From Eutreptiella sp. 'Long Island Sound 2002' (taxonomy: Eukaryota; Protista; Euglenida), in NCBI GenBank assembly GCA_964036045.1, contig OZ038378.1:143592001-143656000 (forward strand): a stretch of DNA of 64,000 nucleotides, given 5' to 3'. Made by a program: the position numbers and the translations under genes. The notes beneath the pieces were generated by a model. The model ran no database searches and was not told where the DNA came from. It saw only the letters and a program-made list of their open reading frames with translations. Below are positions 6,039 through 49,682 of the stretch, piece after piece (the stretch's first letter is position 1; each line of letters starts with the position of its first letter).

Positions 6039-6109
6039 GGCGTGCCTTGGCGCAGGGGCAGGGGATGAGCAGCAGTTCTAATGTGGGCAGGGGATGAGCG
6101 CCAGTTCTA

Positions 6110-26895: not shown

Positions 26896-29555
26896 TGTGT
26901 TGGGGGAGGGGAGGGTGCAGCTCACACACACACACACACAGGCCGCTAGTCGCAGGCCTGCCAGCGAGGCCCCTGGACAAAGAACTCATGGTTTCGCTGA
27001 TGATGGGTAGGCGGTAGGAATGTTGAACCTCGCAGTTTGAGCTTTGATTGAATTATTTGGGCATCGCGCCCAGGCTGGTACAGGCCTCAGGCCTGCAGGC
27101 AGTGCTGCGCACACGGTCTGAGAGGGCGCTTCTGCCGCGGTGCGGGCGCCGTGCAACCGTTGGGTCTTTCTGGGGCCCCTCCGGTGATAATTGCCCCCAC
27201 CAAGAGGCCTCCAGGGAAAAACACACACTACCCAGAAGCCTTTGGGATGTATTGGCAACCAGAAAGAAACTTCCTCAGAAGACGGGTGGTGTGCATGTAA
27301 CTGAGGTTTTCTGGGGTTGTATGGGCTGTTTGGGTGGGGGGTACATCTTGGGATGGTGCACCGGTGTTTGACCACCAAATGGCTGCCACGGTGCGGGCGC
27401 GGCGCAACAACACCACTGAGCCCTGAAATGCAGGAGACCCACAGCTGCTGTGGCAGCCAGAACGGATATCAACCGAGCCCCCTTCCGCTGGAGGCCCTCG
27501 TCAAGGAGAGGCTTAGGCGCTCGATCTAGTGCTCCCTGTCTCTTTGGGGCCCCCTAACAGCTTGTGCCCGGGGACCCTGATCTGCTGGGGGCCTGCACCC
27601 ACCGGCCTCTGGAGATGAATGGAGCGCCTGACATGCACATGCCCCTGACCACGCTGACCCAGGCCGGCGTCCCTCCGACATATGATACCCCCCCTCTCCA
27701 CACACATGCACAGCAAGCCTGTCCACCTGGGCACTGTATGGGTGCGGAGGGGGTTGTTGCTCTTCTGCGATTGTGGCATCATCCCACTTCCCAATGAACT
27801 GGCGGTAGTGCGCAGGGCAAACACGCCCCCAATGTGTGCCATTGCCGCCCCATCACCGTGTCTATATGATCTGACCACTTACATAACCCCCAGGCCAAAC
27901 TCTCTGATGCCGTCCCTCCGGTGCCGCTGGAAGGTGCGTTTCATGTGCTTATCTTGCGGACCCGATACAGAGGCAGAAGGGACGCAGAGGCAGCCCCAGG
28001 GTTGCCCATGACACGCCAGCCCCACTGAGAGGTGGGGTTAGGGTTGGGCATGCGGGTTCCCGGACCCTCCACCCTCCTGTTCCGAGTGGGACTCTGGGTG
28101 TCATCCGACAGCATCGCAGTGGGTGCTCGGCACGGGCGTCATTCGGACAGCAGTGGAGACTGCGTGGGGCCGCCGCACAGCACTTCGAGGCCTGCGGCGC
28201 TGCGTTCACACCCAGAGTCACCCACAACACCGCCCGCTCACTGCCATCAGCCCCCGCCCGGACTGTCCTCTTCTGTTGCTTTCATCTTAACCAAGTGACC
28301 CGCTGCTGCTTGCCACGGAGTGCATTCCCCGACGCCGACAGCCTTTGTGTATGATGTATGGCAAGAGAAACCCACAGACCCGCAGCATTGAATTTGCATG
28401 GGTATGAACCCCGCATACGCCTGACACAGGGGATGCACGAGGGATGCCCCTTCTCGCCAGTCTTGTTCCTTTAGTGCCGCGGTGCTTTGCTTGTGGAAAC
28501 TTTGTTCGGGGGCGCATAAGCGAACCGGGACGTGGCTGCGGTGGACAAAGCGATACGGGCCACAAACCCCACCTTTGTTTTTTTTGCGCCCTCCACGGGC
28601 GACATAAATTTGCTGCACACATTTGCGTGGCCGAAGTTCTTCGTTTTTGTGGATCACGTGGCCCTGGTGGCACCCACTCGGCACGAACCCCCCCCCCCCC
28701 CATTGTTTTTCCCCGGGGGGGGGGGTCCGGGGGGGCCGTCACTTGGCCCAAAAAGCACAGCAATTTGAACATTGACATTACCCCCAATGCAACGGGGGAC
28801 TGGTCGTGGGGTGGGATGGGGTGAGACCTGAAACCATTTTTTTCTGGGGGGGGGGGGGGGGCGGGGGCGAGAGGTTGGTTCCAGACCTGCCACTAGCGTC
28901 TGCCAGCCCAGACATGATCAGATGGAGCAGGGTCCTACTGAGCCACATGCTGGACGCGGCACGTTCCTACTGAGTTCAGGTGGTGCGGGGGGCGGGTATT
29001 ACTGAGTCGCCGTTGATACGGGGCCAATTGTTACCCCCCCCCCCCCCCTTGTATAAGCCACGCCCTTGTCCAAGCTACAGTAGGTGTAGGGACCGTGATA
29101 ATTGTGTACGTAATTTGATTACGTACAAAATGTAGTGTGGCCATATAAGACATGGGTGTGTCGTCACATTTGCCAATTTCAGCACATGTGGCCCCCTGCT
29201 GGTGCACCAGGAATTTTTTTTTTTTGGTCTGATGCATCCCATAGGTCCTAAATTGCCAAGTTCAGCACATGTGGCCTACGCACGTGTGTGTCAGCAGTTG
29301 TATGTGTTCCGCGCAAGCCACCCCCTTGTCCAAGCTACAGTAGGTGTAGGGACCGTAATAATTGTGTACATTGGCGTAGCTTATATAAGGTGTTTTTGTT
29401 GCCCCTGCATGTGGTGACACTGCCACTGAGACTCTAAGACCCAGAATCTTACCGAAAGCAACAACTCTTGAATTACACAGGGCCCAGTGCCCTCGCTTCG
29501 CGCTCACACAGGCCTCTGGCCTCGCTGATACTGCCCTTGAGCGGGGCCATACAAC

Positions 29556-31577
29556 ATGTCGCCCATCGCGCTAGACGACAAAGCGCTACGAGGGCTGCGC
29601 GACATCATCCGCCAGGAGGTCCAGGCGGCCATGGGAGCGACCTCACGACAACAGTCCAGCGCAGCGGCTGGAGAGCGAAACACATCAACATCTGCAAAGA
29701 GCACCAGCAAAGGTGCCAGCCGATCACAAAACCCCACCCAATCCCAGGGGGCAACGGGATCCAAGGCCAGATCACAGTCCCCAGCCCGCCAGTCAACCAC
29801 TGGTGCAGGGAGCAAAACGGTACGAGAAGATCCCAAAGACAAGGAAATTCGGGAGCTCAAAGACATGATCAAAGAGCTCACTGCCACGATCAAGGAGCTT
29901 CGGGCCTCCATTCGACATCCCAAGAAGACTTCAGACAACGAAGATGCAGCGGAGCCAACCCAGCTGGCTCAACGGCCACGCACGTATGCGGACGCAGCGG
30001 CCAAGGGGAAATCCTCCTCAGTGCAAGTCACAGGAAAGCAGCCAGTCCAGTGCCTACACGGTAGTCAAAACGCGATCTGCTGTCAAAGTACTTGGCAAAC
30101 CAAAAGATGTGGGTGTGCCAGTGCAGCCAACGCATGGAGTAGCTGCGGAGGAGGCACGAAACTGGCAAGCCTCTGCCCTACTACCATTGCAACTCTGGAA
30201 AGAAGCCGAGAACAAACAACTTGGCCTTCCGGTGCTGAATCCCAACAAACCACCAGCCGAATGGAAAGTCTCAGAGAGACCAGGCACCTTCCAAAGGGTG
30301 CTCATGCTAGGGGGCACAGCAGACTCATGTGCGGAACTCGCAGACATGGCCTTCACGTCCCACCCTCAGGTAGAACACATGGCTGCCATCGTCAACGTGC
30401 CAAATACAGCCGGAGTCAAAAAGGCAACTGTCGCGGACGCACTACGACGCATGAGACTCTCGCGCGCCGATCTAGATGTTCAGGGCTGCTCGCTAACCCT
30501 GGCAACCCGAATCACGCGAGCCGAGTGGGTCCACTCCGAGGGTCCGCCCAGGCCCATAGCGGATCAGCAGCTATGGATGCAGTGGGAAAGGACCACAATG
30601 GAGCAAGACGACGAATCGGACCATCAGAATCAGACACGGCGGAGCATGCCCCAGTGGTGCCCTCGGAGAGGGAAAGTGGCTTCCACAAGATATCCTTGCA
30701 GATAGACCCTCTTATGTGCTCGGACTCCGAGCTACCTCCGAACAGAACCAAAGGCTCTGCGCAACGCTGGGTGAGGCAGCAAACGATGGAGTACTTGAAA
30801 ACGTGCATGCAAGAAATGACACAGGCTCCGCCAATGTCGATTTTCCGTCGAGCAGAACATTACTCAGTCACGATGGAGCTACCACTGGAAGCAGCCAAAA
30901 GGGTGCTCATTGGGTCGGGCAAGCTACAAGGCATCGAGGCAAGGCCATGGATGTCGAAAGGATCCCCTGGACCTGGACTGGAAGCACGCATTCTCTGGCT
31001 GAAAACACCCAACATGAAGAGCTCCAGCAGCATATGGGAGATCCTTCACTCCCAATACTGGTTTGCTGGTGTACTGACAGGAGACACTGTCGGCAGGTGG
31101 GGAATCCGAATATGGGGAACAGAAGAACCAAGCGAGCAGCAAAGGACAGGTATTGCAAACCTGCTTGGAGCAGAGGCCCCCTCCAAACGGACACGCATAC
31201 GGGTGTACGGATACCCGGCTGGTTTCGGCTATGGTACCACGTGGGCTCAAGAGGAGGCCGCACGTGTTTTTCCCTCAGGCAGGGTCCAAGTCCTTTCCTG
31301 CCAACACCTCGTCAACACGTCCATAACCAAGCCGGTCTTCGACATTACCGTAACAGGGGTGCCAACGGAATGGCAGGCGCACAAGCTGGAGTCCACCGAC
31401 ACCAGAGCAAACCCACGAATTTGGAGGCGGTGCGTATCGCACAAACTCCGACCAACGGCGGAAACAGTTGGACGCCAAGAGAGGCTACGTCTGGCCACAC
31501 GGGCGGGCGACGACCCAGAGACTACCTCTTTGCAAGACGTCGTGGAGGACAACCACGACATGGAGTTAGGACAATAA
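29556..31577 (+). CDS. Retrotransposon ORF1 (coiled coil, RTYADAAAKG, RRM-like C-terminal part)
   Basis: Coiled coil KDKEIRELKDMIKELTATIKELRASI, an ORF1-type YA motif, and RIRVYGYP / DITVTGVP strands. The segment at about 30040-30650 looks more protein-like in the overlapping frame 29944-30705, which implies compensating frame changes. Confidence 0.7.
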   Translation: MSPIALDDKALRGLRDIIRQEVQAAMGATSRQQSSAAAGERNTSTSAKSTSKGASRSQNPTQSQGATGSKARSQSPARQSTTGAGSKTVREDPKDKEIRELKDMIKELTATIKELRASIRHPKKTSDNEDAAEPTQLAQRPRTYADAAAKGKSSSVQVTGKQPVQCLHGSQNAICCQSTWQTKRCGCASAANAWSSCGGGTKLASLCPTTIATLERSREQTTWPSGAESQQTTSRMESLRETRHLPKGAHARGHSRLMCGTRRHGLHVPPSGRTHGCHRQRAKYSRSQKGNCRGRTTTHETLARRSRCSGLLANPGNPNHASRVGPLRGSAQAHSGSAAMDAVGKDHNGARRRIGPSESDTAEHAPVVPSERESGFHKISLQIDPLMCSDSELPPNRTKGSAQRWVRQQTMEYLKTCMQEMTQAPPMSIFRRAEHYSVTMELPLEAAKRVLIGSGKLQGIEARPWMSKGSPGPGLEARILWLKTPNMKSSSSIWEILHSQYWFAGVLTGDTVGRWGIRIWGTEEPSEQQRTGIANLLGAEAPSKRTRIRVYGYPAGFGYGTTWAQEEAARVFPSGRVQVLSCQHLVNTSITKPVFDITVTGVPTEWQAHKLESTDTRANPRIWRRCVSHKLRPTAETVGRQERLRLATRAGDDPETTSLQDVVEDNHDMELGQ

Positions 31578-31918
31578 AGCTGACCGCCCGGGTAGTGGCA
31601 TTGCTGCACCCAAGGACATGCACGAGCCGGTACAAACAGCCGCCGTGCTACGCGAGCCGGACACGTCCGCCGCGCAAGAAGTCTTCAGGATTCCTCTTGT
31701 GCATGCTGTGCCTTCTGCCATGGTGCTCTAACCATAAACAATTTCGCCGTACGCCAACCTTGAGCGCACGCAAGTGCCCCCCCACTGAGCTGACGAGAGA
31801 GGATGCAATGATAACCGCTCGGGCACGCAGCCCTGAAATGATGCTCCCCCTACCAGGGCTCTCACCACCCAGGACATGCAACTGCCGCATGGACTGCCTA
31901 TCCCTGATGACAGGTACT

Positions 31919-32815
31919 ATGTTCTCTTCCATGGGACGGTCGCACAAAAGGCGAAGGTCGGACTCCGGCAGCGAAGAAGGTGAACGCCAACATCAAAGGC
32001 GGCAGCAGCCGCAACAGCATAACCACATTAATGTCCACGTCCACCAGCCCCAACAGCGGCACCCAGATCGATCGAAACGCCGCAGTGCACACCGAGAACG
32101 ATGCAGGATTCAAGGCGAGACCAGACGGATGGAAAGCGCGCTGCGAGAGCTCGACGCCCAACAGGCAACTGAAATGAAAGCAGCCCGGGAGGAGCAGCAG
32201 TCGGCCGCGCGGTACACTGACAGGGCCCCTCTGATTCCGTTCCAGGCCAACCCGCCGAGACACAGGCCGCGGACACCAGGCTACGAGCAGGTGATGGCCC
32301 GCCCCCCTCTCCCCAGCTATGAGGAGGTAGTGGGGATGGCAGCAGACGAGGACGAAGCAGAGCATGGCCCCAGCAGACCTGGACTCGCCAACCCGTACTC
32401 CCTGCAGCAGCTGAGGAACATCTCGACAGCGGTGCAGATGCAACCGGAACGACCCACGGTGATCACCGACGTCCTGTACAAGACAGGCTCATACATAGCC
32501 TTGGCGCTGGAGCCCCATCTTGCGCTGCATCACCGCGATGACCGGGTCAACGACTGGGCCACGGATGTCGGACACCAGCTGGGCTTCAACGACGTGCCAG
32601 AGCCCGACACGGTCAAGCAAGGGACCCATGCGGCGCCACGAAACTGGAGGCTACGGCTGCGGGGAAAGAAGCCCCAGACTCACGTTCGGCATCAGCTCCA
32701 ACGCCAAATATGGAGTGTCCCAATACGCTTGGGCCTCGGGTGCGGAGTGGCTGATCAGCCGCATTCAAGCCCAAACAACAGCAGTGAGGCCGCAGTCACC
32801 ACCACCGGAGGATGA
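31919..32815 (+). CDS. Extra retrotransposon ORF (ORF-X): basic/Gln-His-rich N-terminus, short coiled coil, PY-like motifs
   Basis: ATG 31919/31931; MGRSHKRRRSDS..., RRMESALRELDAQQATEMKAAREEQQ, PGYEQ, PPLPSYEE. It lies inside the TSD-bounded element. Confidence 0.55.
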   Translation: MFSSMGRSHKRRRSDSGSEEGERQHQRRQQPQQHNHINVHVHQPQQRHPDRSKRRSAHRERCRIQGETRRMESALRELDAQQATEMKAAREEQQSAARYTDRAPLIPFQANPPRHRPRTPGYEQVMARPPLPSYEEVVGMAADEDEAEHGPSRPGLANPYSLQQLRNISTAVQMQPERPTVITDVLYKTGSYIALALEPHLALHHRDDRVNDWATDVGHQLGFNDVPEPDTVKQGTHAAPRNWRLRLRGKKPQTHVRHQLQRQIWSVPIRLGLGCGVADQPHSSPNNSSEAAVTTTGG

Positions 32816-35800
32816 CGATGCCCAGCCGCCGGCATACGCACCACGCCAAGAGTTTGTGGACCAGGTATGTGCTGACTATGCTTGGCAGGTGTCTGAACGT
32901 GCGGTCTCCTCAGCAAGTGCTGATACATGCAGATGCAGTATCCCCCTGCTCACACCAACTTGCCTTCTCTCTTCTAGTGGCTCGACCCAGAATGGAAGCT
33001 ACAGCGAGGCTACCGATACGGCAGATGACCGTGACCTGCAAATCTGTCAAGGCGCACCATCCCTGCTGCCCATGCACACTCTCAACCCTACCAGTGACCA
33101 GCAGGCCAGCAGAGCTGAGACGGAGAGCTCCGCTAGCCTCCCAGCTAAGCCGTACGCGAGACGGGAACGCCCGCCGCGTCTCAGTGCCGAGAGGCGGTCT
33201 GTGATGGCGAGCGCCGCCAGACTATTATGGACGAGTCGGGTAGGCCCGCCGCCCTTAGCAGTGGTGCCTGAAACACACCGCAATGCCAGTATTCACTGTC
33301 ACCGTTACCCCAGGACTTCTCTTCCTGAACCCCTTAGCCCGCCTAACCGCCTGGCCTACATTGTTCCTTTTAGCCTCCTGCTCCCGGATCAGCCAGATCA
33401 GAATCCCACCCTAACGCAGTCGGCCCACGAATTGGTACAGCCGGTGCCACCTGACCAGTGGGCCGCGCTGCATGTGCGCGCACACACACGCGCACCCACA
33501 CACCCACACTGGAAACGCGACCAGATCCTGCGTTGTGGTGACGTGCACCCCAATCCAGGACCCACCTCTCTAGCACTCATCAACGTGACGGCCCTGCGAG
33601 CACACCACCATGAAGTGTTGGGTTTGCAAGAGGACATCGTAGCACTCACGGAAACACGACTCACGCAAGGGGCCCAGAATGCAATGGCCTTCATGGTGAG
33701 ACAGAAGGGGTGGCAACCCTTTTGGGGAGCCCCCCTACTGTCCAAGACAGGCGGCATCTGGGGAGCCGCCCCAGGAGGGGCGGCCCTTCTGGTACGGGAA
33801 AAGTGGCCGGCAAAGCAAGCCCAGCGGGACCCGGGATGCACACTAAGTGAGGAAATGTGGAATTCAGGCAGGTGGCTGCACGTCATTGTGACCCCAGCGG
33901 ATGGCAAACGTCCCCTGAACGTGATTGTGGTGTACGGGATCCCAGGAGACCACAAGCTAAACGACAAGCTATGGGAAGCAGTACTGACCCAAGTTGCAAA
34001 GCTGGGGAACTCCCCCTTTCTGATAGCCACGGATGCCAATGTCCAACTAGATCACTACCGCTGCATGCCCAACCTCATGATGACGGAGCTGCTGTCGGGG
34101 CGCATTGTGGATGTCGACCTCTTGCATGCACGGACAACGGGACAAGACTGCCAGTGCTCGTACCACAATGGCTCAATCAAACAGAAACCAACCAGAATTG
34201 ATGGTATTCTAGCAGATGCCAAGACGGCCAGTGCCATCATGAAAGTCTCACCAACCGAAAGATGTCCCGTGCCTGGACACAAGCCGGTCACCTTCACCTT
34301 CAACTTCAAGCAGTCTGCCCAGAGGGTTCTGAAGTTTGTGCGGTTACCACCCATGATACCAGCCCATCTGCAGAAAAGCAAGCGTGACCAAATAGTGAAG
34401 GACGTCACAGAACCGTACGTGGCGATATGGGAGAAAGTCCTTGACAATGAGGCGTCCACGGCGGATCAACTGTGGGACCTCTGGACTTGGCTGGCTGAAG
34501 AAACCATGCTGGTCCTGACCATGGCACCGCCGCCGGCGGTCCGGACTGGAATATGCCAGTTACCACTGGCTCCCCAAGAGTTGCCGAGAGGACGGGGAAC
34601 CAAGAAGATGCTCAAGACAGTGGAGCTCACGCCGAAACGCATGACGTCGTCAGGTCTCCCGTGCACTGCACCAACCAAGGAGATGTCCGCCCTGCTGAGC
34701 GCCCTTGTGCCGGTGATGAAGTGGGCGGCAAGCAGGGAACAAGCCGCGGTCCCTGCTATGGGCCCCATACCGCGAGAGGTCCTCAGCAATTGGAAGGCAA
34801 TACGCAGGAGGGCCCACCGCATTCTTCAACTCATCTCCAAAGGGCAATGTGTTGCTGAGCACCAAGAATTACTGCGCACGGTGATGGAGGCTCCAGAAAA
34901 TGCGCCCATGACCATTACAGACCTGGTCCGGCTCAACGATAAGATTAAAATGCTGAGCAGGCGGCAACTAGCTCAAGAAGAGAAGAAGAGGCACCAAGAT
35001 TGGAGAGAATGGATTGAGGAGACCTGGACCACGTCGCCGGGGAAGGTGTACCAATGGATCAAGGAGGACAAGTACACGCCCGCTGTCCTGATCCAGAAAG
35101 ATGACGGCACCCTGACTGGCAATGTGCCCGAAATGGACCTCGTGATACATCAGAAATGGGACCCCATAATGAGGCAGCATGCGGATCCGACGCTGCCAGA
35201 GCCAGACACTGAGCCCTTCTGGCGCAGGTTTGGCAAGTATGTGGAGCATCACCGGATGGAATGCCAGCCCATCACCGCGGAGCGCCTCTGCCGCCAGTTC
35301 AAGGACATGAAACGCAGCCGGGCCACAGGGCTAGACGGCTGGACTGTCGTAGACATGCGGAACATGCCATGGCCGCTACTGCACATGCTGGCTCAGCTGT
35401 TGAACTGGGTTGAATCCCATGGTGTATGGCCTGAGCAACTTGCCACAGGGTACATTCAGCTGATCCCCAAAGGCGAGGGCAGTGAGCCACTACAGCTCAG
35501 GCCGCTGTCGGTGCTGTCCGCAATTTATGGCGCCTGGTCCGGTATCCGCCTCCGTGACTGCCTCGTCTGGCAAGAGAAGTGGGTGCACCGAAATGCATTT
35601 GCCTTCAGGCCGCAGAGGAGCGCCCTGGACGCAGCCACCCTACTAGCCGCCCTCATTGAGCGAGCACACCTACTGAGGCAGGCATTATCTGGCGCTGGCA
35701 CTGACTACGTGAAGTGTTTTGATTTGATACCACAGCAAATCTGTTTCCGGATGGCACGAGAGTTCGGCCTGGACCCCAAACCGCAGGCGGCATTGGAGGC

Positions 35801-37073
35801 CATGTATCAACAATTACACAGGGCGTTCAAAATAAATGGGGCATTGGGCTCCTTCTTTCACGCCACGAACGGCGTGCTGCAAGGGTGCGCCATGAGCGTA
35901 CTCATGATCAACATGCTCACCACAGTCTGGATGCGCGCCGTGGACGAGCTGGAAGGAGCCATCTCAGTGACGGTGCGCAGCCTGCCGCCCATACCGCCCA
36001 AGCTGGAAGAGCCCAAGGAGCTGAGGTACAGACGTAAACCCTCCCAGCCCACCACGGTGTCACGCCATCGGCCACCACCGGCCCCAGGCAGGTGTGTCAT
36101 GAAGACCTTCGGCTCGGGGATTGACCAATTTGAATATTGGGAACACTTCAACCCTTGCACATGTGGCCATGGACCCCCACCTCAGCAACCGCAGCCGCCA
36201 CATCCCTCCTCCGCACCCATGCCCGCATGCGATGGACTGGCGGAAGAGGAGATGGCAGCATCGGAGGAGTCCCCACCCCCCAGCCCAGCAAAGCTGAGGG
36301 GTGCTCAACCCCAGCCACAAGAGGCGGGCACGATCCATGTCGGGTCCATGGGCTATGCAGATGACACGTACCCGCTGCGATCCGAGGGCCAATACATGGC
36401 GCCGGTGATGAAGCTCACTGATGAGTGGCTGGCTCTTACCTTGCAAAAAGTGAACCCCAAGAAGTCATTGTCCATACAAGTACGACAATCCAAGGAAATT
36501 GCGCGCAAACACACGGTTCTCCAGGGGATCTCACTCCCCCTCCAAGCTGAATTTCGCTCGCTGGGGGTGGGTATTCGTACCAGCCTGACCAGAGGGACGG
36601 GCCCGCTCCTGAAAAAGAGGATATCCAAGGGGAAACACCTGCTATCCAGAGTGAGGGGTGCACAAGGGGGCTTCAGCCGGCGAACACACATCATTGCCAC
36701 TCTGGTACAAGCCGCAGCCCTATGGGGTACCCCGGGGGCGGAGGTGTCCCGGAGGGATCTACAGAGCTTGGAGACGGCAGTGCTCCACAGTCTGTGGGGC
36801 ACCTCGAGGCCTGGTAGGGCGAAGGAGGTCATCTTCGTGCTGCTAGTACAGGGACACCGAGTGTCTCCTCTCATGAAAATCACGTATGACAGGATGTGTT
36901 GGCTCCTCGCGGTGGCACGCACGCCAGGCCGTGCTACAAGGTGGTGTGCTTACCAAGTGCTCCTCCCTAGTCCCACTGGGAGCCCCCACAGTGGTGGGTG
37001 TGTCTGCGAGACCGTATTTCACACGGCGCCCGGACATGCTAAAACTCCTACAAAACCTGCAAGAGTACTGTGA
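32520..37073 (+). CDS. Retrotransposon pol ORF: 2A-like peptide, AP endonuclease, reverse transcriptase
   Basis: APE: INVTAL, LTETRL, GGAALLV, VVYG, ATDANV, TRIDGIL, PGHKPV. RT: ATGLDGW, LIPKG, LRPLSVL, AFRPQRS, DYVKCFD, LQGCAMS, GYADDT, KVNPKKS, SLGV. The true start is uncertain. Confidence 0.93.
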   Translation: MRCITAMTGSTTGPRMSDTSWASTTCQSPTRSSKGPMRRHETGGYGCGERSPRLTFGISSNAKYGVSQYAWASGAEWLISRIQAQTTAVRPQSPPPEDDDAQPPAYAPRQEFVDQVCADYAWQVSERAVSSASADTCRCSIPLLTPTCLLSSSGSTQNGSYSEATDTADDRDLQICQGAPSLLPMHTLNPTSDQQASRAETESSASLPAKPYARRERPPRLSAERRSVMASAARLLWTSRVGPPPLAVVPETHRNASIHCHRYPRTSLPEPLSPPNRLAYIVPFSLLLPDQPDQNPTLTQSAHELVQPVPPDQWAALHVRAHTRAPTHPHWKRDQILRCGDVHPNPGPTSLALINVTALRAHHHEVLGLQEDIVALTETRLTQGAQNAMAFMVRQKGWQPFWGAPLLSKTGGIWGAAPGGAALLVREKWPAKQAQRDPGCTLSEEMWNSGRWLHVIVTPADGKRPLNVIVVYGIPGDHKLNDKLWEAVLTQVAKLGNSPFLIATDANVQLDHYRCMPNLMMTELLSGRIVDVDLLHARTTGQDCQCSYHNGSIKQKPTRIDGILADAKTASAIMKVSPTERCPVPGHKPVTFTFNFKQSAQRVLKFVRLPPMIPAHLQKSKRDQIVKDVTEPYVAIWEKVLDNEASTADQLWDLWTWLAEETMLVLTMAPPPAVRTGICQLPLAPQELPRGRGTKKMLKTVELTPKRMTSSGLPCTAPTKEMSALLSALVPVMKWAASREQAAVPAMGPIPREVLSNWKAIRRRAHRILQLISKGQCVAEHQELLRTVMEAPENAPMTITDLVRLNDKIKMLSRRQLAQEEKKRHQDWREWIEETWTTSPGKVYQWIKEDKYTPAVLIQKDDGTLTGNVPEMDLVIHQKWDPIMRQHADPTLPEPDTEPFWRRFGKYVEHHRMECQPITAERLCRQFKDMKRSRATGLDGWTVVDMRNMPWPLLHMLAQLLNWVESHGVWPEQLATGYIQLIPKGEGSEPLQLRPLSVLSAIYGAWSGIRLRDCLVWQEKWVHRNAFAFRPQRSALDAATLLAALIERAHLLRQALSGAGTDYVKCFDLIPQQICFRMAREFGLDPKPQAALEAMYQQLHRAFKINGALGSFFHATNGVLQGCAMSVLMINMLTTVWMRAVDELEGAISVTVRSLPPIPPKLEEPKELRYRRKPSQPTTVSRHRPPPAPGRCVMKTFGSGIDQFEYWEHFNPCTCGHGPPPQQPQPPHPSSAPMPACDGLAEEEMAASEESPPPSPAKLRGAQPQPQEAGTIHVGSMGYADDTYPLRSEGQYMAPVMKLTDEWLALTLQKVNPKKSLSIQVRQSKEIARKHTVLQGISLPLQAEFRSLGVGIRTSLTRGTGPLLKKRISKGKHLLSRVRGAQGGFSRRTHIIATLVQAAALWGTPGAEVSRRDLQSLETAVLHSLWGTSRPGRAKEVIFVLLVQGHRVSPLMKITYDRMCWLLAVARTPGRATRWCAYQVLLPSPTGSPHSGGCVCETVFHTAPGHAKTPTKPARVL
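33516..33563 (+). other. 2A-like (StopGo) peptide RDQILRCGDVHPNPGP immediately upstream of APE
   Basis: Matches DxExNPGP except E->H. This position before APE is where 2A-like sequences are known in non-LTR elements such as L1Tc. Confidence 0.75.
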
Positions 37074-38886
37074 GCTGCGCTGGACGGCTGTGCTACAGGC
37101 ACCGCCCCCCTCACCGGACACCAGGCGGAGGAATGCCCAGCGGGCCAAGGAACGGCAAGAGGCGAAGGAGTCCAGCCCCAGCATCAGGGAGCGCATTCCC
37201 AAGCTCAAATACACATCGTCGCTGCTGCCTGCTATGCACACCCCCAGGCATCTCACTGGCAGAGGAGGAGGTAAGAAGAGTGCCACTCTGTTTGCGGCTG
37301 ACTACTTCCCAGCACACCGCCACCCTAGGGCTCCCCCCACGCGGCCCTACCGGCTGCTCCGACCTGCCAAGCAGGCGGCCCCGCCTCAACCTGATGTGGC
37401 TGCAGTGGGCTCGAGTCACCAGGCGGCCCTGCCGGCGGGGCGAGCGGCAGCGCCCAGCGATCTGTCTCAGCGAGTAGATGCGCTAACGCCCCCAGATGCG
37501 CCTCTAGGTTGGGCCCCGCCGTCGTCGTCACCTCCAGTGCAGGTGGAGTACACCTCGGAGGAAGGGCCCTCTACCCCGGAGGTCTTCTCCTCGTCGTCCT
37601 CATGGGAATCTGAGCCCAACAACAACGGGGGGCACTATCGACGAGCAGCGATGGGGCCCAGGTGCGGCCCCGCACGGTCCCCACTGCCACACGCAGTGCC
37701 CCGCACGCGCGCTCCCAGGGCCCGATCCGTTCACCGGTCAGGGAACCCGGCGCCGAGGAAGACACGGCGTAGGGTGCCTCCCGCGCGGGCGCCCCGAGGG
37801 ATCAAAAGGCGGCAGTCCATCACGGAAGGGCGGGGGAGCCCACGACGCAAGCGACCCCAACTGCAGCAAGGGGATGAGCAGTCACATACGGCCCTGGAGG
37901 CCCCAGGCCGTCACAGGGGCCCAGCTGGAGCTCCCCTCCCCATGTCCAGGCACACGCTCTCATACCTACAGCTCACAGGAGCTATCACTCGGGCGTCACG
38001 CATAGTGGTGGTGAGCACCCCAGAGGGGCAGCGCACCCCACTACCGACACGGAGCCCGGTGCAGCCTCCAAACGAAAGGGGACGCGACATTCCCCCGGGA
38101 ATAGCACGGATGCTACAGCAGATCAGAGTGCCTCACGCCAGGCCACAACCGCTGCCGCCCCAAAGGGAAACACGGCCCAGCGCGCGGACTTCACGCGCCG
38201 CCGTCCTGCCCACCGGCCCTCGGATGGGGTTCGATAGCATTTGCACCCCGTCTCCGCGGGTGCTGAGTAGGCCAGGGCAATTCTCGCCATCTCCGGCATG
38301 GTCACCGGCGGTGACTTCCAGTTGGCACTCAGTGCGGCACATGTCCCCAGAACATTGGTCGCCCGCGTGCACACCAGGGGGGGGGTCTAACCGACAGCAG
38401 GATCCACCTCACCTGCCCCCCATCCCGCTGGCGCCCCTATTTGAGAGCGCCATGTCTACCCCGCGAAGGAACAGCACTCAGAGTGCGTCTGATGAGGACG
38501 TGCAACAATATGCAGTCCAGTATTCTGCCCCCCCCGAACTGCCCCCCACCCTGCTGGCGCCACTTTTTGAGAGCGTGATGTCTGCCCCACGAGTGGGCAG
38601 CACTCATCGGGAGTGCGATGAGGACATGGGTCAGTACGAAGTCCAGTACTCTACCCCACCCTCCGGGGGGGAATGGCCCCCTAACCCCTTTACCTTTCCC
38701 TCTCCACGCGGAGCACAGCGGCTCTGCACGGAATTGCCTGGCATGGCCCGACAGGGCCAGGGGTGGGTTCGTGATCCCCATGCACGACACTCCACCATGC
38801 TGTACAGCATGCAGGAGGGTGACCTGTCTTCCAACAGCGCGGATGGGCTCATGAAGCATGGACGGGCCTCACGTGAGGTGACCTAA
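36886..38886 (+). CDS. Frame-shifted continuation of pol: about 600 aa Pro/Ser/Arg-rich tail with a 42-aa duplication
   Basis: Open frame overlapping the end of the RT ORF. A 126-bp direct repeat at 38404/38530 encodes PP.LPP..LAPLFES.MS.PR..ST...DED..QY.VQYS. Confidence 0.55.
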   Translation: MTGCVGSSRWHARQAVLQGGVLTKCSSLVPLGAPTVVGVSARPYFTRRPDMLKLLQNLQEYCELRWTAVLQAPPPSPDTRRRNAQRAKERQEAKESSPSIRERIPKLKYTSSLLPAMHTPRHLTGRGGGKKSATLFAADYFPAHRHPRAPPTRPYRLLRPAKQAAPPQPDVAAVGSSHQAALPAGRAAAPSDLSQRVDALTPPDAPLGWAPPSSSPPVQVEYTSEEGPSTPEVFSSSSSWESEPNNNGGHYRRAAMGPRCGPARSPLPHAVPRTRAPRARSVHRSGNPAPRKTRRRVPPARAPRGIKRRQSITEGRGSPRRKRPQLQQGDEQSHTALEAPGRHRGPAGAPLPMSRHTLSYLQLTGAITRASRIVVVSTPEGQRTPLPTRSPVQPPNERGRDIPPGIARMLQQIRVPHARPQPLPPQRETRPSARTSRAAVLPTGPRMGFDSICTPSPRVLSRPGQFSPSPAWSPAVTSSWHSVRHMSPEHWSPACTPGGGSNRQQDPPHLPPIPLAPLFESAMSTPRRNSTQSASDEDVQQYAVQYSAPPELPPTLLAPLFESVMSAPRVGSTHRECDEDMGQYEVQYSTPPSGGEWPPNPFTFPSPRGAQRLCTELPGMARQGQGWVRDPHARHSTMLYSMQEGDLSSNSADGLMKHGRASREVT

Positions 38887-39228
38887 AGGCCGGAGGGAGG
38901 AGCCTCTTGTCATACAGGGCGGCAGCTCTCCAGGCACCCGCGCGACTTGCCCCTTGGGTGAGTCTGGGAGCTGGAATGGGTAGAAGCCCCATGGACTATT
39001 GCTCCTTAATATGATTTCCTTCCTTGGCGTAGCTTATATAAGGGGGGGGGGGGTACTGAAAACCAGTTGCCCTGCCGGACGCTAGGGGCATGCCCGGTTC
39101 GTTCTAAAGGGCTTGCAGTGCGGTATGGCGAGATCCTGCCGTCATCAGGGCCGTCGCCAGCGCCCAGCTGCTGCCCGTGGGAGACGCAGGGACACAAAGG
39201 AGGTGTACGGGGATGCAGGGTCGTCAAG

Positions 39229-40826
39229 GGGGGCGTACCGTGCGCTGTGCACGCGCTGTGCACGCGCTGTGCGAAAAGTTGGCTGTTCTCCACCACTGGG
39301 AGTTCGGTAAGTTCAGAAGATTGAAAGGACGTCATTGAATGGCTGCTGCAGTGGACGGGGCTATAGGGGGCAGAATTTAGGTCCCTGGGACCCATGGCAA
39401 GCATCAGATGTTTGAATTTTTGAGTTTTGAATTGATTGTGCATGATTCCGCAGGTGGGTGGTTTTCAGGGTTGTTACCTGGATAATCACCGTAACAATTG
39501 GCGCTGTGCGCGCGCTGTGCGAAAACGCCCCCCCAAGCTACAGTACGCGTAGGGACCGTAATAATTGTGTACATTGGCGTAGCTTATACAAGGGGGGGGG
39601 GGTAGAGCAATGAAGAGGAAGAACGCTATTACAGAGCCACGGCTGAGAAAAATCCACGGAGACACAAAAGCTGCGGTTCATCGCTTGCGTAGAGAGGGCG
39701 GTGAAGCATCAGATACTCGGCTCACGTCCAAGCCCGTGGCACCGGCATACAACCATCGCTTGAATCTCAAGACAGTGCAGGTCAATGCGTGCCACTTCAT
39801 CATCTGCTATGCACACAGCCCCTCCGTTTGAGCAGGCACCCATTGTCTGCGCTTGAACTGCTACCGTTGTCCATATGGAGAGGGAGAGAGACGTAGAAGG
39901 GGGGGGGGGGGGGTGATCGTGAGGCCACTGGGGGACTATCCGCACCATGTGCACTGTGGCAAGGCTCGGAAGTAAACCCGCCATCCCTACCAATCTGCGG
40001 AATGGTCTGTTCTGTCCTGGTCCGCATCCTCCGGCAAGTTCCCATACATATCACAAGTGTTGTGTGTTGTGCGGACGATCTGCTGTTCTAAATTCCAGTC
40101 CCACCAGTACAGGCACAGCCCCTCCTACACCACATTCGCTGTGCCATCCATCAATGTGGATGCCATTTTGGGCGCCAAATGAACTTGCACAAACCTGCCT
40201 TCCTCCTCAAAGGTTTCCCAAGCCTCGCCAGACCAGCTCACTGTCGCCTTGGTCCAGGCGCCATGCACAGAAAATCACCTCGCAGAAAGATTGAGGGCAG
40301 GCATGAGCATTTCAAACACAACAATACCCCTATCCCCCCCAATATTTTATAAAACCCAAAATACCCCACACACGCAACACCTGCACTGCAGATCATCCTT
40401 ACACAAGTCACCCCACGGGCCAAAAAGATGAAACCCAATATCTATGAACATGATTTCCACACACCCATTGCTCCAAGAATGCTCGATTTCTCATTTTTCA
40501 CCACACTGGGGGCGTACCGTGCGCTGTGCGCGCGCTGTGCGAAAAGTTGGCTGTTCTCCACCACCGGGAGTTCGGTAAGTTCAGAAGATTGAAAGGACGT
40601 CATTGAATGGCTGCTGCAGTGGACGGGGCTATAGGGGGCAGAATTTAGGTCCCTGGGACCCATGGCAAGCATCAGATGTTTGAATTTTTGAGTTTTGAAT
40701 TGATTGTGCATGATTCCGCAGGTGGGTGGTTTTCAGGGTTGTTACCTGGATAATCACCGTAACAATTGGCGCTGTGCCCGCGCTGTGCCCGTGCTGTGCG
40801 CGCGCTGTGCGAAAACGCCCCCCAAG
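39229..40826. repeat. Two near-identical copies of an interspersed repeat of about 310 bp (39229-39536 and 40508-40826)
   Basis: Direct comparison. The second copy is flanked by a 35-bp direct repeat (40473-40507 / 40822-40856, 2 mismatches). Confidence 0.85.
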
Positions 40827-42840: not shown

Positions 42841-43074
42841 ATGGTCTCCCCCCAAATCATTTGGCCCCTGGTGCGCCTCGATGGCTCCGGTCGCATGTGC
42901 ATCGAGCTCTCCGTCGTTGCCGCTGCCGCCTTTGCGGCCGGCATGGCCCTGTGGGGCATCGCCCAGCACCTGCGGTGTTTTGTCTGGCCAGAAATGCAGA
43001 AGTACTACGTTCGGATCCTCGCGTTCATCCCCATAAGTTGCCTGGCCTGCACCCTGTCATTTCTGTACCCGCAG
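42841..43074 (+). CDS. OST-alpha/TMEM184 family transporter, exon 1
   Basis: TM helix, then QHL....PEMQKYYVRILAFIPI...LSFLYPQ, the family N-terminal motif. Donor CAG|GT at 43075, phase 0. Confidence 0.8.
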
Positions 43075-45907
43075 GTGTCTGTGCCAACTGCAACGGAATG
43101 CTGCGTGGGTGGCTGCACCTTTGGAAATGCAGGGAGGGGCATGGGGGTGCAGGGAGGTGCAGGGAGGTCAAGGAGTGCAGCCTGTCCGCATTCCAGACGC
43201 ATGTGGAGACAGGGCCGCTGACCACCCCGGCGCCACATAGGGACGTGATAGGCCACGGCTGTCCTGATGAGACAGCGTGTGCGTCCCGTGCCCCAATGTC
43301 AGTGCGGAGATACGGGCACGAGGGCTTTTGCAGGCGTCATCATTGGGGCCCCGATGGCCGCGCCAAGTGCCATACCCAAGCGGTCGTCCGCTAGCGGGGG
43401 CGGGGCCTTCTGCCGCCCGCCGCCCGCGCGAGGTCCTGTGCACCCTGGTGCGCCTGGCGCCTCCCCGGGCGAAGGGCGTAGAGACCCCCCCCAAGGGCCA
43501 CCAGCCGTTTTATTGATCCTGGTTGTTCTTTAGAGTCGGCAGAAAGGACAAGCACCCGCAGAGCTAACCGCAAAAAACGCCTCACTGTACTTTACATAGT
43601 GGAGCACCCCAACCAAGAAGGGGACACGTGCATTGATTGGACTTCGCAGTACTGCTGGACTAATGGCTGGAATTGTCTATGGCGGGGACATTCAGTCTAT
43701 CGGAACCGACCATTGATCCCCCCCCAGCCGTGTCCCAGGCACCGTGCAGGCGGCAGCCGCGTCCGGCGCCCCGAGATCCTGCCGTCATCAGGGCCGTAGC
43801 CAGCGCCCAGCTGCTGCCCGTGGGAGACGCAGGGACACAAAGGAGGTGTACAGGGATGCAGGGTCGTCAAGGAGGTGCAGGGAGGGTGATGGGGGTGCAG
43901 GGCAGGGCTTCGCTTGAAGGGGAGGGGGGGCGATCGGGGCAATTCCAGAGCGGTTGCAGAGCGGTCACAGGGGATGTGAAAGCGGTTGGGGGTTGGGCGG
44001 TTACTGGCGGTTGGAAATGCGGTTGGGGCTCTGGTGTTGGGGTGTGGGAATGTGAATCAGGGCCGGAGTGTTGGGGGGGCAACCCCCCCCCCTTTCAAGC
44101 GATGCCCTGGTGCAGGGAGGTGATCGAGGTACAGGTGGTTGGTGTTTGGTGTGGAGGCGCCCAGCCTTTGCCAATGGGACCCTTGTCGGCACGTCCTCCC
44201 GGGGTAGAGTGCAAGGAAGCAGTGCAGCCCTCTGGCCCAGTTGGCGACGAAATGAGCGCTGGTTCCTGGTTGCGGGGCTGGGGTGAGGGCAGGGGGGCTG
44301 CCTGCACTCCGTGCACCTCCTTGACTTGGCGGCCCAAAAATTGCTTTGCGGGGGGGGGGATGGCATGGGCGCCCGGCGAAGGAGAGGGGGGGGGGGTGTT
44401 CCAGAAATGGGCATCCGTGCCGGGCCCTTTGTTTTGTGTAAGGACGGATGTTGCCACCAAAGGCGCCGGAACACAAATTTTGGCCCGGAAAATTTTTTTC
44501 ACGAAAAAATTTTCCCCCACATATGTGTAGTCAAAATGATCAGCGCGACGTGGGGATCATTTTGAGCCATGTATGTTGGGGTCGCCCCCCCCCCCCCCCC
44601 CGGCACGGCAGGTAGGGCAGCGCCAGCCCAAACCCCCCTCCGGGCACGGCAACCAAGGAGGGGGAGTGGGGGCGGTTGGGCAAATGGGCTTCCGTGCCAT
44701 CCCCCCTCTGCAAAGCAATTTTCTTCCCGCCCTGCCTGCACTCTTGCACCTCCTTGACTTCCCACAGTCTCCCTAACCCTCCCTACACCTCCCTCACCTC
44801 GTTGTCAAGGATGTGTAAGGAGGGGTGGGGAGATGCATGGAGGCCAAGGAGGTGCAGGGGCGGGGGGTGTAGGGGGTTGCAGGGACACGGTGTAGGAGGT
44901 GCAGGGAGTGGTAGGGAGATCAAAGAGGTGCGGCAAGGGTTACGGACATGTAGGGAGGTTAAGGAGGTGCGGCGTGGACAGGGAGGTGCGGGGGGGTCAA
45001 GGTTTTGGAAGGTTTTCTTTACTTTCTTTATTTTTCGATCATTGGGTTCGCTTCTTCCTGGTGTTGCCTTCACATCAAAGGTGTGGCTGGCACCGGGCAG
45101 CGTACTCTGTAGTGTCGTCAGGAGAAGACATTGTCCTCTCTCGTTGTGATGGGTGGGACTAAAGATGCCCCCCCCCCCGTGTTCAACGAACGCCTTGTCC
45201 CACGAACACTTCTGTTCAGACCGTATTGTTTTGGTACCTGAATTAATTGGGAACCAAATTGGGTTAATTGATTAATTCGGTAAAGAACGGCGTGTCCAAC
45301 GCACACTCCTGTTCGGACCGCTTTTTTTTTGGATTTTATTGTTCGCTGGACATGGGGGGGGGGATTGTGATACGATGTGATACTATGTTCACTGCAAGCA
45401 ACAAAAACAAGAGGTCATGAGGTCCAGTTGCAGGGAGGGGTAGGGAGACGTTGGGAGGCCGGGGGGCGTGCAGGATGGGGGTAGGGAGATGCAAGGAGGT
45501 CAAGGACGTGCAGGAAGGGGATGGGGAAGGGAGGTGTAGGGAGGTGAAGGGGCAGGGAGTGGTATGGCGATGCCGGGCAGTTCAGGAGGTGCACGGAGGT
45601 GCACAGAGGTCAAGGAGGTGGAGGGAGGGGGTGGGAGGGGTACGGAGGTGCGGGGTGCTCAAGGAGGTGCAGGGAAGAGTGGAGAGATGCAGCGATGTCA
45701 ACGAGGGGCAGGCAGGGGTAGGGGGGGGGGTGAGGAGGTGCAGGGAGGCCAAGAAGGTACAGGGAGGGGGGGGGGCGGGGAGATGCAGAGAGGTCAAGGA
45801 GGTGCAAGGAGGGGTAGGGGCATGCGGGGACGCCAAGGGGGCGCACCGTGCCCTGTGCGTGCGCTGTGCGAAAAGTCGGCTGTTTTCCACCACCGGTAGC
45901 CCCGGCT

Positions 45908-46295
45908 CCCAGGGTTCTGAATCCTGCATCCTACAGCCCCTGCTGGTACACCAGTGCTTGCCACGGGTCCCAGGATCCTGAATCCTGCACCCTACAGCCC
46001 CTGCTGGTACACCAGTGCCTGCCACGGGTCCCAGGGTTCTGAATCCTGCATCCTACAGCCCCTGCTGGTACACCAGTGCTTGCCACGGGTCCCAGGGTCC
46101 TGAATCCTGCACCCTACAGCCCCTGCTGGTACACCAGTGCCTGCCACGGGTCCCAGGGTCCTGAATCCTGCACCCTACAGCCCCTGCTGGTACACCAGTG
46201 CCTGCCACGGGTCCCAGGGTCCTGAATCCTGCACCCTACAGCCCCTGCTGGTACACCAGTGCCTGCCACGGGTCCCAGGGTCCTGAATCCTGCAC
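45908..46295. repeat. 61-bp minisatellite, about 6.3 copies, in intron 1 of the TMEM184-like gene
   Basis: Unit CCCAGGGTCCTGAATCCTGCACCCTACAGCCCCTGCTGGTACACCAGTGCCTGCCACGGGT; no spacers. Confidence 0.92.
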
Positions 46296-46555
46296 CCCCG
46301 ATGCTGTTTTGAATGGATCATGCACGCTTCTGTAGGGGGGTGCTTTGCAGGGGTGTTCCCGGGATAAACACCGTAACGATTGGCGCTGTGCGAAAACGCC
46401 TCCCAAGGAAAGGAGGTGCAGGGAGGGGTACGGAGTTACAGACAGCAACCCCCGCCACGCCGTTGCCCGGTGCCCCCCTGACGCCCCCCCCCTCACCCCT
46501 GCCGCCGCCTTGCCTCCTCTTCCACGCCCCCTTCCGGCCCTTCCCGGCCTCCCAG

Positions 46556-46767
46556 GCCGCCAGCACCTTCGAGCTTCTGAACGCCGCCTACGAGCCCGTG
46601 GCGTTCCACTCGTTCTTCGAGATCATGGTCGTGTACCTCCGCCGGGGCGACATGGCCTCGCACCTCCACACGCCGCGGGGGCTGCGGCGGCACTTGCTTT
46701 GCATCCCCGTCCCCTGCCTGGGGACGTACGCGGACGGCATGCAGGCGCTGGAGGCGTACGAGTGGAG
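46556..46767 (+). CDS. OST-alpha/TMEM184 family transporter, exon 2
   Basis: A polypyrimidine tract plus AG at 46554-55; AASTFELLNAAYEPVAFHSFFEIMVVYL...; donor AG|GT at 46768, phase 2. Confidence 0.8.
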
Positions 46768-47510
46768 GTGCTGCCGCGCCCGCCCGCCGCGCGCCTCGGC
46801 CCTCCACCCCAAAAGCGCCGCCAGCGGCGCAGCAGCGGAGGCGGAGGCCGGGCCCTCCAAAGCGCGTGCCACGGGGGACCGGGGGGGGGGGGGAGGGGGC
46901 GCGTGGACGGCCGTGGGGCGCATGCGACGGCCCGGCGATCCACCGGAGGACCGGGGGAGGGCACCAACGGGCGATGGGTGGGGGACGGCCCTTTGGTACT
47001 GCGGTCCTGCGATGACCTGCGGCCTGAACTCTCATGTGCGGATGGCGGGGGGTGTGTCCGGCGAGGGGGTCGTCCGCTCCGGACACGCGGGCGGCGCGGC
47101 AAAGGCCCGCGGCCCCTGAGAGGCATGGCCCCGCGGTGTTTGCGGGGCAGTGACCCCCCCCCCCCCTCCCCCCCCCCGACAGCCAGCCTCAGCCCCGCGA
47201 CCGACGGCCGCTGTGGTTTGGCACAATGGGCCGCGGTGCAAAGCCCGCGGCGTCTTTGGATTCCTCTCGTTGCTTCTTCGGTTGGTCACATGAACCCCCT
47301 GCGGCGGCCGGCGGCAGTGCAGGGCCGTCGTGGTGCAGGGCGGCGGGGAAAGGACAGCGTTTGTACGCCGGGCAGGTACACTGCTGTGCGCCGCGGGTGG
47401 GGTCTGCATTCAGCACAACACCGTGCCACACTGCGCCATACCGCACTGCAAGCCCTTTAGAACGAACGGGGCATGCCCCTAGCGTCCGGCAGGGCAACTG
47501 GTTTTCAGTA

Positions 47511-48039
47511 CCCCCCCCCCCCCTTGTATAAGCAACGCCAATGTACGACCTGTGAACAAATGGTGCTGGCGCCTAACGGCACCTTCATGGACAGTATGAA
47601 CGATTTGTGCCGCGGCTGCGCCGCGAGATACTTGATGAGGGCATAGGTCTGTCGGTGGGGACCTATTGCTGGACTTTTCACCGTTCTGCAGATAAGCTAC
47701 GCCAATGTACACAATTATTACGGTCCCTACACCTACTGTAGCTTGGACAAGGGCGTGGCTTGCGCGCAACACATACAACTGCTGACACACACGTGCGCAG
47801 GCCACATGTGCTGAACTTGGCAATTCAGGACCTATGGGATGCATCAGACCGAAAAAAAAAAATTCCTGGTGCACCAGCAGGGGGCCACATGTGCTGAAAT
47901 TGGCAAATGTGACGACACACCCATGTCTTATGTGGCCACACTACATTTTGTACGTAATCAAATTACGTACACAATTATCACGGTCCCTACGCCTACTGTA
48001 GCTTGGACAAGGGCGTGGCTTATACAAGGGGGGGGGGGG
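47511..48039. mobile_element. Second (inverted) copy of the poly-C/G MITE, containing a 145-bp insertion (47547-47691)
   Basis: TA flanks at 47509-10 and 48040-41. The insert is bounded by ATAAGC(A/T)ACGCCAATGTAC at 47528-46 and 47692-710. Confidence 0.8.
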
Positions 48040-49682
48040 TAACAATTGGCCCCGTATCAACGGCGACTCAGTAATACCCGCCCCCCCCCCCCCTGCACCA
48101 CCTGAACTCAGTAGGAACGTGCTGCATCCAGCGTGTGGCTCAGTAGGACCCTGCTCCATCCGATCATGTCTGGGCTGGCAGACGCTAGTGGCAGGTCTGG
48201 AACCAACCTCCCCCCCCCCCCCCCCCCGAAAAAAAGCAATATCATTCATGGTTTCAGGTCTCACCCCATCCCACCCCACAACCAGTCCCCCGTTGCATTG
48301 GGGGTGGGATGGGGACCAATCCTCTTCATACAATGGCACTCACCGCCATTGTACACACACACATTTGCAAGCTCGACGGTGCTTTCTAGTCTCGCTGCAC
48401 GCCCGGAGCTGAGGGGCTTTTTGTTTTTTTTGCAAAAGATGAGCCCCACTTGTGTACGTTCAAAACGATCAGCGGGTCATGGGGATCGTTTTGAGGTACG
48501 CATGTTGGGGTACCCCCCCTCCCCTGGGGGACCCTGCCGGCTGACCGCCCGACCCGCCCACCCCCTGCGTTTGGGTCAATGAAGCCCCCCCCCCGCCAGT
48601 ACACCCCCCCTCCCCTCCAATGACCCTATCCAGATCGGCAGGCCTGGCCGATGGAGTGCCAGCCACAGAGCAAGGGCCAGCAGGATATGGCGCAGGTTAC
48701 CCATGCATTGTAGCATTTAGGCCAGAGGTTGTGGCTGACAACACACGGCCAACCAATGAACAACGAGCCAATGGTTGTCCATAGCATTGATTGGAACTGC
48801 CTCTATATTGCTGCATACGCATACCGGGACGTGCATGTGTGGAGCGCTTTGGTGACCTGTGTGCGGCCCTCGAGGGTGCCCAGCCTATGCCCAGCCACTG
48901 TCCCCCTGACGCCGAGTGCCAGCCTCAATGGCATTTGTAACCGTCAGTAACCGCCCCCAACCGCTGCGGCAACCTCCTCCAACCGCCTGTCCAGGGCCCC
49001 GTAAAGGAGCAACAACCAGACGGAATGTCACACAGGGGGCCACGTGGTCGCTGGTAGGCCCATGCGGCAGGGATGCATTGGAAAGGGGGGTACCACCGAC
49101 GCTCGAGAGGGACTCAGTGTAAATCCAGTGGGACTGCCTCCACATTGCTGCATACGCATACCGGGACGTGCATGTGTGGAGCGCCTTGTTGACCTGCATG
49201 CGGCCCTCAGGACACGCTATCTCTAGTCACAAAGAATTCGTTGCCTGCAGTAACCTCAAGGGCCTGTAGGTCAGGACCCGCTTGGCTGGCCGCACCAGAC
49301 CCGTTACCACTCATTAAGTTGTCCACCTTCTCCTAGTCGCAGCCCTACAAACACCAGATGACAACAGCCTGCAATACCTGAGAGTACAGTGGGCGGTCGA
49401 CCCCATGCCGAGCTTCACAAGCCAGCGGAAAAAACGTTAAAATATTGTAATTTGGCAGAACCGGCGCTGTCACTGGAGCTGTGAGAACTGCCTCCACATT
49501 GCTGCATATGCATACCAGGACGCGCATGTGTGAAGCGCTCTTTGACCTGCGTGCGGCCTCTACAACCCCTGAAATGGTTGAACACCCCTCGGGGCCGGGG
49601 CCTGGCTGGGGGCCGCCCCCCGTTGCATTCGTGCCTCGTCGTCCCGTCACCGTATGGCCCCCCCAGGCGTGCCCTGCCTCAG

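Follow-up and report, generated by a model that had tools for sequence, protein, structure and literature searches.

In the euglenid Eutreptiella sp. 'Long Island Sound 2002', a family of long interspersed nuclear elements (LINEs) inserts at one defined position in the terminal repeat of a miniature inverted-repeat transposable element (MITE). In the window, by which we mean the whole 64,000-nt stretch analysed here (assembly GCA_964036045.1, contig OZ038378.1, positions 143,592,001 to 143,656,000 of the forward strand), this family is represented by a 145-bp insert in one MITE copy, while another MITE copy 18 kb away is interrupted within the same terminal repeat by a 9.6-kb LINE. We consider it likely that the two MITE copies are paralogs within an inverted duplication and that they were later hit by the site-specific LINE, hereafter the specialist, and by an unrelated bystander LINE.

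The 145-bp insert has at least 1,260 candidate matches in the genome, the best of which are 86-96% identical. It corresponds to the 3' untranslated region (UTR) of a 5'-truncated LINE copy; longer copies run upstream into an open reading frame (ORF) with RNase H and into a reverse transcriptase (RT). A genome-wide count gave 245 occurrences of the exact 3' end of the insert, TTCCACCGYTCTGCAG, and in 229 of them (93%) ATAAGC comes next. Likewise, the junction of CTGCAG with ATAAGCTACGCC was found 208 times and its reversed control 0 times. Each of the 30 sampled copies is inserted at ...TTGT/ATAAGCTACGCC or a near variant, where the slash marks the insertion point, and has a 3' flank beginning with ATAAGC or a near variant. 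The specialist terminates in ...CTGCAG at these loci, the last or first base being missing in two. Twenty-five of the 30 loci lie in a left-type MITE end (..CGCCCTTG or a near variant), three in a right-type end and two in related repeats. The 5' truncation points vary among copies, and the inserts are found in different MITE subfamilies with different outer flanks.

Duplications of the target were analyzed for 20 specialist copies of 113-1,296 nt. They are 9-23 nt long (mode 16), each starts at ATAAGC, and the 20 inserts have 19 different lengths. A C-run followed by TTGT or a near variant precedes 17 of the 20 copies, and the remaining three are arranged in tandem, with the 3' end of another copy and a duplication upstream. 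The 19-nt duplication in the window falls within the observed range. The fixed 3' end, the varied truncation and the duplications starting from ATAAGC indicate target-primed reverse transcription in which the first nick is fixed and the second cut is placed less strictly. On the basis of its common flank, these hallmarks of target-primed reverse transcription and a LINE-type RT, the family of the 145-bp insert is a target-specific non-LTR retrotransposon (LTR, long terminal repeat), operationally defined as an element with more than 20% of its copies flanked by one sequence (Kojima 2015, PMC4494074).

Two specialist loci show other surroundings. Locus L043 (C7:92.72 Mb) lies in a different repeat end, C-run-TGG/ATAAGCACATCC, and L037 (C2:18.81 Mb) in ATAT(A)12GCACCGCC. 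Together they may mean that the invariant core comprises little beyond the C-run context and ATAAGC. The last 145 nt of the specialist are highly conserved and contain GGCGCC-N4-GGCGCC and CGCGGC-N3-GCCGCG hairpins as well as a long terminal hairpin. Covariation in the 3' UTR is restricted to one compensatory CG/GC pair (13:7), which is too little for a structure claim.

The targeted MITE is a Tc1/mariner-type, Stowaway-like element, as evidenced by its TA duplication, terminal inverted repeats (TIRs), small size, absence of an ORF and high copy number. We found at least 3,756 candidate copies in the 2.28-Gb genome, the best 93-98% identical, and 3,320 exact terminal words. The element measures about 350-375 bp (about 375 bp for the copies in the window). 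Its termini consist of a run of 10-16 C followed by TTGTATAAGCTACGCC, with the inverse at the other end, and TA is present at both ends in 17 of 23 parsed copies. In the right MITE end at locus L007 (C12:22.02 Mb), GCTTATACAAGGGG stands twice inside the terminal repeat with nothing in between; this short duplication may be the footprint of an aborted or lost insertion.

The specialist discriminates between the two MITE ends. The right-type context ..CGCCAATG (..AATG) accounts for 4 exact junctions genome-wide, including that of the window, versus 898 unoccupied-type words, whereas the other contexts account for 204 junctions versus 2,422 unoccupied-type words. This corresponds to an odds ratio of 19 (p=6e-22) in favor of left-type ends. 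Since left- and right-type ends differ only from position +13, discrimination reaches at least to +13 to +16, the region of the usual second cut. The 145-bp copy in the window is thus a rare right-end hit of a left-preferring specialist.

The ORF of the specialist encodes an RNase H (PF00075, E=1.8e-25) that is preceded by a zinc-knuckle-like stretch, and the stop codon is located about 170 nt before the 3' end. An extension of 7 kb (L091, C8:42.71 Mb) reaches an RT piece (L091:1126-1581, minus strand), for which the best match among solved structures is human L1 ORF2p, residues 503-639. In this stretch, the L048 copy breaks off a short way upstream of the RT, through an interruption or a truncation, and positions 1-5400 of L091, read on the element strand, contain the ORFs of another retroelement, including a different RT-like ORF of 442 aa. 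Within the approximately 1,000 aa from RT to stop codon there is no Pfam nuclease match, only the zinc-knuckle-like stretch, RNase H and an acidic tail. A CCHC motif with a PD-(D/E)xK nuclease C-terminal to the RT was not found there, which argues against assignment to the R2/NeSL/Utopia/Dualen class. Copies of the specialist are about 80% identical in protein, and the longest open frame around the RT comprises 998 aa among the best-scoring copies.

Searching protein representatives with the RT piece yielded 49 relatives at E<=1e-10. Six long relatives were scanned; RVT_1 was present in all six and an apurinic/apyrimidinic endonuclease (APE)-like domain in two. Protein fragments 77% (P0001, on a 1.15-Mb contig) and 67% identical to the specialist are located on megabase ENA contigs. 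The nearest full-length relative, P0010 (1,502 aa), has an APE domain at residues 55-278 (Exo_endo_phos), an RT at 574-800 and an RNase H at 1321-1462. It is collinear with the C-terminal ORF of the specialist (E=7e-29), and its RT matches L1 ORF2p with an E-value of 2e-25 and R2 with 6e-13. By comparison with this relative, the specialist probably has an APE-type, L1-like architecture.

In the window, TTGGCGTAGCTTATATAAGG occurs exactly on both sides of the 9.6-kb LINE (29391-39023), where a word search of the window gave a chance expectation of none, and has near-copies at 39574-39593 (one mismatch) and 47522-47541 on the reverse strand (two mismatches). The 145-bp insert (47547-47691) is bracketed by 19-nt direct repeats that agree in 18 of 19 bases. 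If the repeat is counted from the final two C of its C-run, the duplication of the LINE covers positions 1-20 and that of the 145-bp insert positions 7-25, so the two have 14 nt in common within the same terminal repeat of the MITE. The LINE and the insert have opposite orientations relative to the repeat, and their first-strand nicks would lie on different strands, 14 nt apart. A third copy of the terminal repeat (39535-39602) is uninterrupted. These results agree with the first-pass annotation of this DNA, which had described a LINE with a 20-bp duplication in the right TIR of a MITE, a 145-bp sequence with a 19-bp duplication containing 1 mismatch, a 14-nt overlap between the two targets and an empty third TIR copy at about 39570-39602. 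Its statement that two of three copies were hit needs correction, as a scan for terminal words located five target sites in the window (29049, 29373/39026, 39576, 47524 and 48012), of which two are occupied.

Both occupied MITE copies belong to an inverted duplication of about 700 bp, in which 28780-29390 together with 39044-39130 aligns with 48305-47434 at 97.7% identity in a self-alignment of the window. MITE copies 1 and 2 have the TA duplication and the outer flanks in common, which makes them paralogs derived from a single MITE insertion. Where one arm is occupied, the other is empty, indicating that both retroelement insertions are later than the inverted duplication. The earlier claim of independent insertions hence holds for the two retroelement events and not for the MITE copies, which go back to one original insertion.

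The 9.6-kb LINE is a member of a different, young family that is not site-specific, and it most likely landed near the same spot by coincidence. It is 9,633 bp long, lacks poly(A) and encodes an RT (RVT_1, E=1.4e-9); its APE-like match is weak and under the Pfam cut-off (Exo_endo_phos, E=0.002). A search with its last 200 nt gave at least 1,041 candidate matches in the genome, the best 96-100% identical. Among 30 sampled copies, the MITE repeat is found 3' of the window's copy only (1/30), and the 3' flanks of the other 29 comprise 28 different and unrelated sequences, in which T is slightly overrepresented at the first position. In line with this, the LINE-repeat junction word has a single occurrence in the genome, even with two mismatches allowed. 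The 30 sampled copies thus lack the common flanking target that characterizes a site-specific LINE. The first-pass annotation had suggested that retroelements target the transposon end, with enrichment of the TIR motif in their flanks as the test; the 145-bp family bears this out with 229 of 245 3' ends and all 30 sampled copies at the target, while the 9.6-kb LINE, with its unrelated flanks, does not. As one hit was made by a specialist and the other is most likely coincidental, the proximity of the two is no evidence for a shared hotspot.

A close relationship between the two LINE families was considered and rejected, their RT pieces aligning at only about 20% identity (E=0.26). The motif GGAC(C)TATTGCT occurs in both families 20-21 nt from the 3' end (38993-39003 and 47659-47670 in the window) and may represent a 3' recognition motif or chance.

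Three other explanations were weighed. The repeat could be a true shared hotspot, either because both LINE families target it or because it is fragile or pre-nicked and attracts retroelements generally. The presence of two different elements no more than 14 nt apart at two of the five sites in the window speaks for this, as does the chance expectation for insertions of the 9.6-kb LINE into the target, which is below one genome-wide (about 0.06-0.5, given about 1,000-3,000 copies and 3,000-10,000 target ends). However, the diverse flanks of the other 29 copies and the unique junction word contradict such an attraction, the LINE is opposite in orientation with both inferred nicks at positions where the specialist does not cut, and an exact 20-bp duplication such as it has is what endonuclease-dependent insertion typically leaves. 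We therefore regard a shared hotspot as very improbable. Alternatively, the abundance of junctions might be due to hitchhiking only, that is, to the amplification of MITEs carrying one old insert. Loci L033 (C1:146.35 Mb) and L036 (C2:26.13 Mb) indeed have one MITE with a 247-nt insert in common, at 94% identity and with different outer flanks. In addition, junctions are found as close pairs, and the duplication restores an intact outer terminus, so that an occupied MITE could in principle move. The L033/L036 pair suggests that occupied MITEs can still be copied or moved; at both loci, a second LINE copy has also inserted in tandem into the regenerated site, and these second copies differ between the loci. 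As the main cause, however, hitchhiking is largely refuted by the variety of insert lengths, the range of the duplications and the occurrence of inserts at MITE ends of both types, across several MITE subfamilies and in the different repeat of L043. That it acted alone has hardly any probability left.

Targeting might also be guided by RNA. The endonuclease would then be only loosely specific, and precision would come from read-through transcripts with target sequence at their 3' ends that pair with the nicked end of the MITE, a mechanism suggested for R1 and R2. Consistent with this, the specialist lacks poly(A), and its end coincides precisely with the target. Most donors reside in left-type ends, from which read-through RNA would favor left-type targets and fit the 19-fold bias, and cotranscription with the target can strengthen specificity (PMC4494074). 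Still, the use of one exact phosphodiester in 93% of the copies requires a specific nuclease or DNA-binding module, and the flank of L043 agrees with the usual target for only 6-8 nt past the nick. We judge this explanation unlikely, though less so than the other two.

Our preferred account remains that of paralogous MITE copies hit by a specialist and a bystander. Accordingly arranged, the steps would be as follows. The specialist would be an L1-like LINE family with RT, zinc-knuckle-like region, RNase H and a structured 3' UTR without poly(A). It would integrate by target-primed reverse transcription at a single phosphodiester, (C)n-TTGT/ATAAGCTACGCC. The strand priming cDNA synthesis would be nicked opposite T/A, presumably by a sequence-specific APE endonuclease, and the other strand would be cut 9-23 nt (mode 16) further in, giving duplications that always begin with ATAAGC. 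A dispersed, dispensable repeat may provide the specialist with a safe haven. The bystander, the 9.6-kb LINE with its weak preference for T at the nick, would have landed on the other strand 14 nt away.

Several points weigh against this account. The MITE and insert common to L033 and L036 mean that the figure of 229 overstates the number of independent events. The APE domain of the specialist is predicted from a relative, P0010, with no more than 38% identity in the RT piece. None of the best-scoring copies showed a fully open ORF2, and the specialist may no longer be active. The end preference could arise from annealing of read-through RNA and not from recognition by the endonuclease. Finally, one case leaves room for a mild attraction of the 9.6-kb LINE to an AT-rich patch in a genome of 58% GC.

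With the nick placed about 4 nt inside the C-run, a 16-nt duplication reconstitutes the outer terminus, so that an occupied MITE may still be able to move and to be hit again. This allows for a two-tier partnership of LINE and MITE, which we put forward tentatively, in which the occupied MITE would stay mobile, carry LINE fragments along and each time offer a fresh landing site. It is conceivable, if rather doubtful, that the MITE spreads the targets of a LINE that does not kill it, and that the LINE is an independently evolved L1-like lineage outside animals. Such a partnership would include recognition of at least 22 bp of another transposon's end, which we see as similarly speculative.

The features of the window that relate to the two insertions are compiled in Table 1. 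The inverted duplication encloses about 8.3 kb of repeat-rich DNA, and a 61-bp tandem array (45827-46375) and G-rich repeats of a 39-nt type (43100-45870) are located between its arms. The possibility that the arms are the ends of a large transposon was dismissed, as no target duplication was seen at the outer edges of the inverted duplication.

Table 1 Features at and around the two occupied MITE copies, in window coordinates.
Feature	Position	Strand	Remarks
Outer flank, arm A; ends in left TA of the MITE (29032-29033)	28780-29033	+	Aligns to 48305-48040 on the other strand
MITE copy 1, from left terminus (C-run, then TTGTATAAGCCACGCC) to LINE insertion point	29034-29390	+	
Left copy of the 20-bp target duplication of the LINE	29371-29390	+	Exact match
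Full-length 9,633-bp LINE, not site-specific	29391-39023	+	ORFs, RT, weak APE-like match
Right copy of the 20-bp target duplication of the LINE	39024-39043	+	Exact match
Last 10 nt of MITE copy 1 (G-run)	39044-39053		
Right TA duplication of MITE copy 1	39054-39055		
Inner flank, arm A	39056-39130	+	Aligns to 47508-47434 on the other strand
Isolated right-end fragment of a MITE with G-run and TA, target site empty	39535-39604	+	Self-alignment, site scan
Inner flank, arm B; ends in TA duplication (47509-47510)	47434-47510	-	
Outer piece of the right terminus of MITE copy 2	47511-47546	-	C-run 47511-47523, TTGT 47524-47527, 5' copy of the duplication 47528-47546; layout as at the 5' junctions of 20 other copies
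5'-truncated copy of the site-specific LINE (3' UTR only), ending in CTGCAG	47547-47691	+	
3' copy of the 19-bp duplication, starting at the invariant ATAAGC	47692-47710	+	
Rest of MITE copy 2, left terminus empty; TA at 48040-48041	47692-48039	-	98% complementary
Outer flank, arm B	48042-48305	-	Self-alignment

Apart from these elements, the 24-nt word of the Euglena gracilis spliced leader has 5,458 copies across the chromosomes of the genome (at most 1 mismatch) and 0 for the reversed control, which marks the genome as that of a euglenid. Its spread points to a massive dispersal of spliced-leader RNA genes or of retroposed RNAs capped with the spliced leader.

Site-specific LINEs that target a transposon are already known from animals, and the specialist is a euglenid example. 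A literature search for a site-specific LINE in Euglena found no report in the library searched. In Xenopus laevis, the non-autonomous piggyBac transposon Tx1D serves as the target of Tx1L (Christensen et al. 2000, as cited in PMC4494074). As far as Tx1L is described there, the specialist resembles it in that copies sit at one sequence of a dispersed DNA transposon and form composite elements. Specificity of Tx1L is attributed there to an APE-type endonuclease; for the specialist, an APE is predicted from its relative. Unlike Tx1L as portrayed in that source, the specialist resides in a euglenid, carries an RNase H and targets the extreme terminus of a TA-flanked MITE instead of an internal repeat of a piggyBac derivative.

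The closest parallel in target type is found in crocodilians, where Tx1-Mar LINEs and SINEU-3 insert into Mariner-N4_AMi and the target borders about 90% of the copies; a target duplication lies between tandem insertions, and truncated copies served to show independent insertion (PMC4494074). Another element, Tx1-9_AMi, inserts into Harbinger elements, and the Tx1 clade is described as an animal group (PMC4494074). Like Tx1-Mar, the specialist uses a non-autonomous target of Tc1/mariner type, has about 90% of its copies at the target and forms tandem insertions with a duplication. Tx1-Mar, in contrast, uses two internal regions (around 240 and 830) of an element of about 1 kb, whereas the specialist hits a single phosphodiester in the terminal repeat, so its duplication regenerates the outer end of the MITE. 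Moreover, Tx1-Mar has SINEU-3 as a partner, while no partner short interspersed nuclear element was identified for the euglenid specialist.

The main target-specific LINEs comprise early-branched, Tx1 and R1 lineages, for which a safe-haven rationale has been given (Kojima and Jurka 2015, PMC4640811). The specialist shares with R1, R2, Utopia and Keno the precise 3' junction, variable 5' ends, tandem reinsertion and the logic of a multicopy safe haven, but those elements reside in multicopy RNA genes and the specialist in a transposon, not a host gene (PMC4640811). It also differs from LINEs with a restriction-like endonuclease, as its C-terminus carries an RNase H and no restriction-like endonuclease was found there.

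Overall, the euglenid example comprises junctions in the hundreds, is precise to the single nucleotide and shows a measurable 19-fold preference between two ends; it indicates that a safe-haven strategy emerged, or was retained, at a great distance from animals as well. It points to a long recognition site read by a natural endonuclease or target-recognition module, which ordinary biochemistry can address. For annotators, it explains a recurrent composite repeat made of a MITE end and a LINE tail, and it cautions that adjacent insertions in one repeat need not have a common cause.

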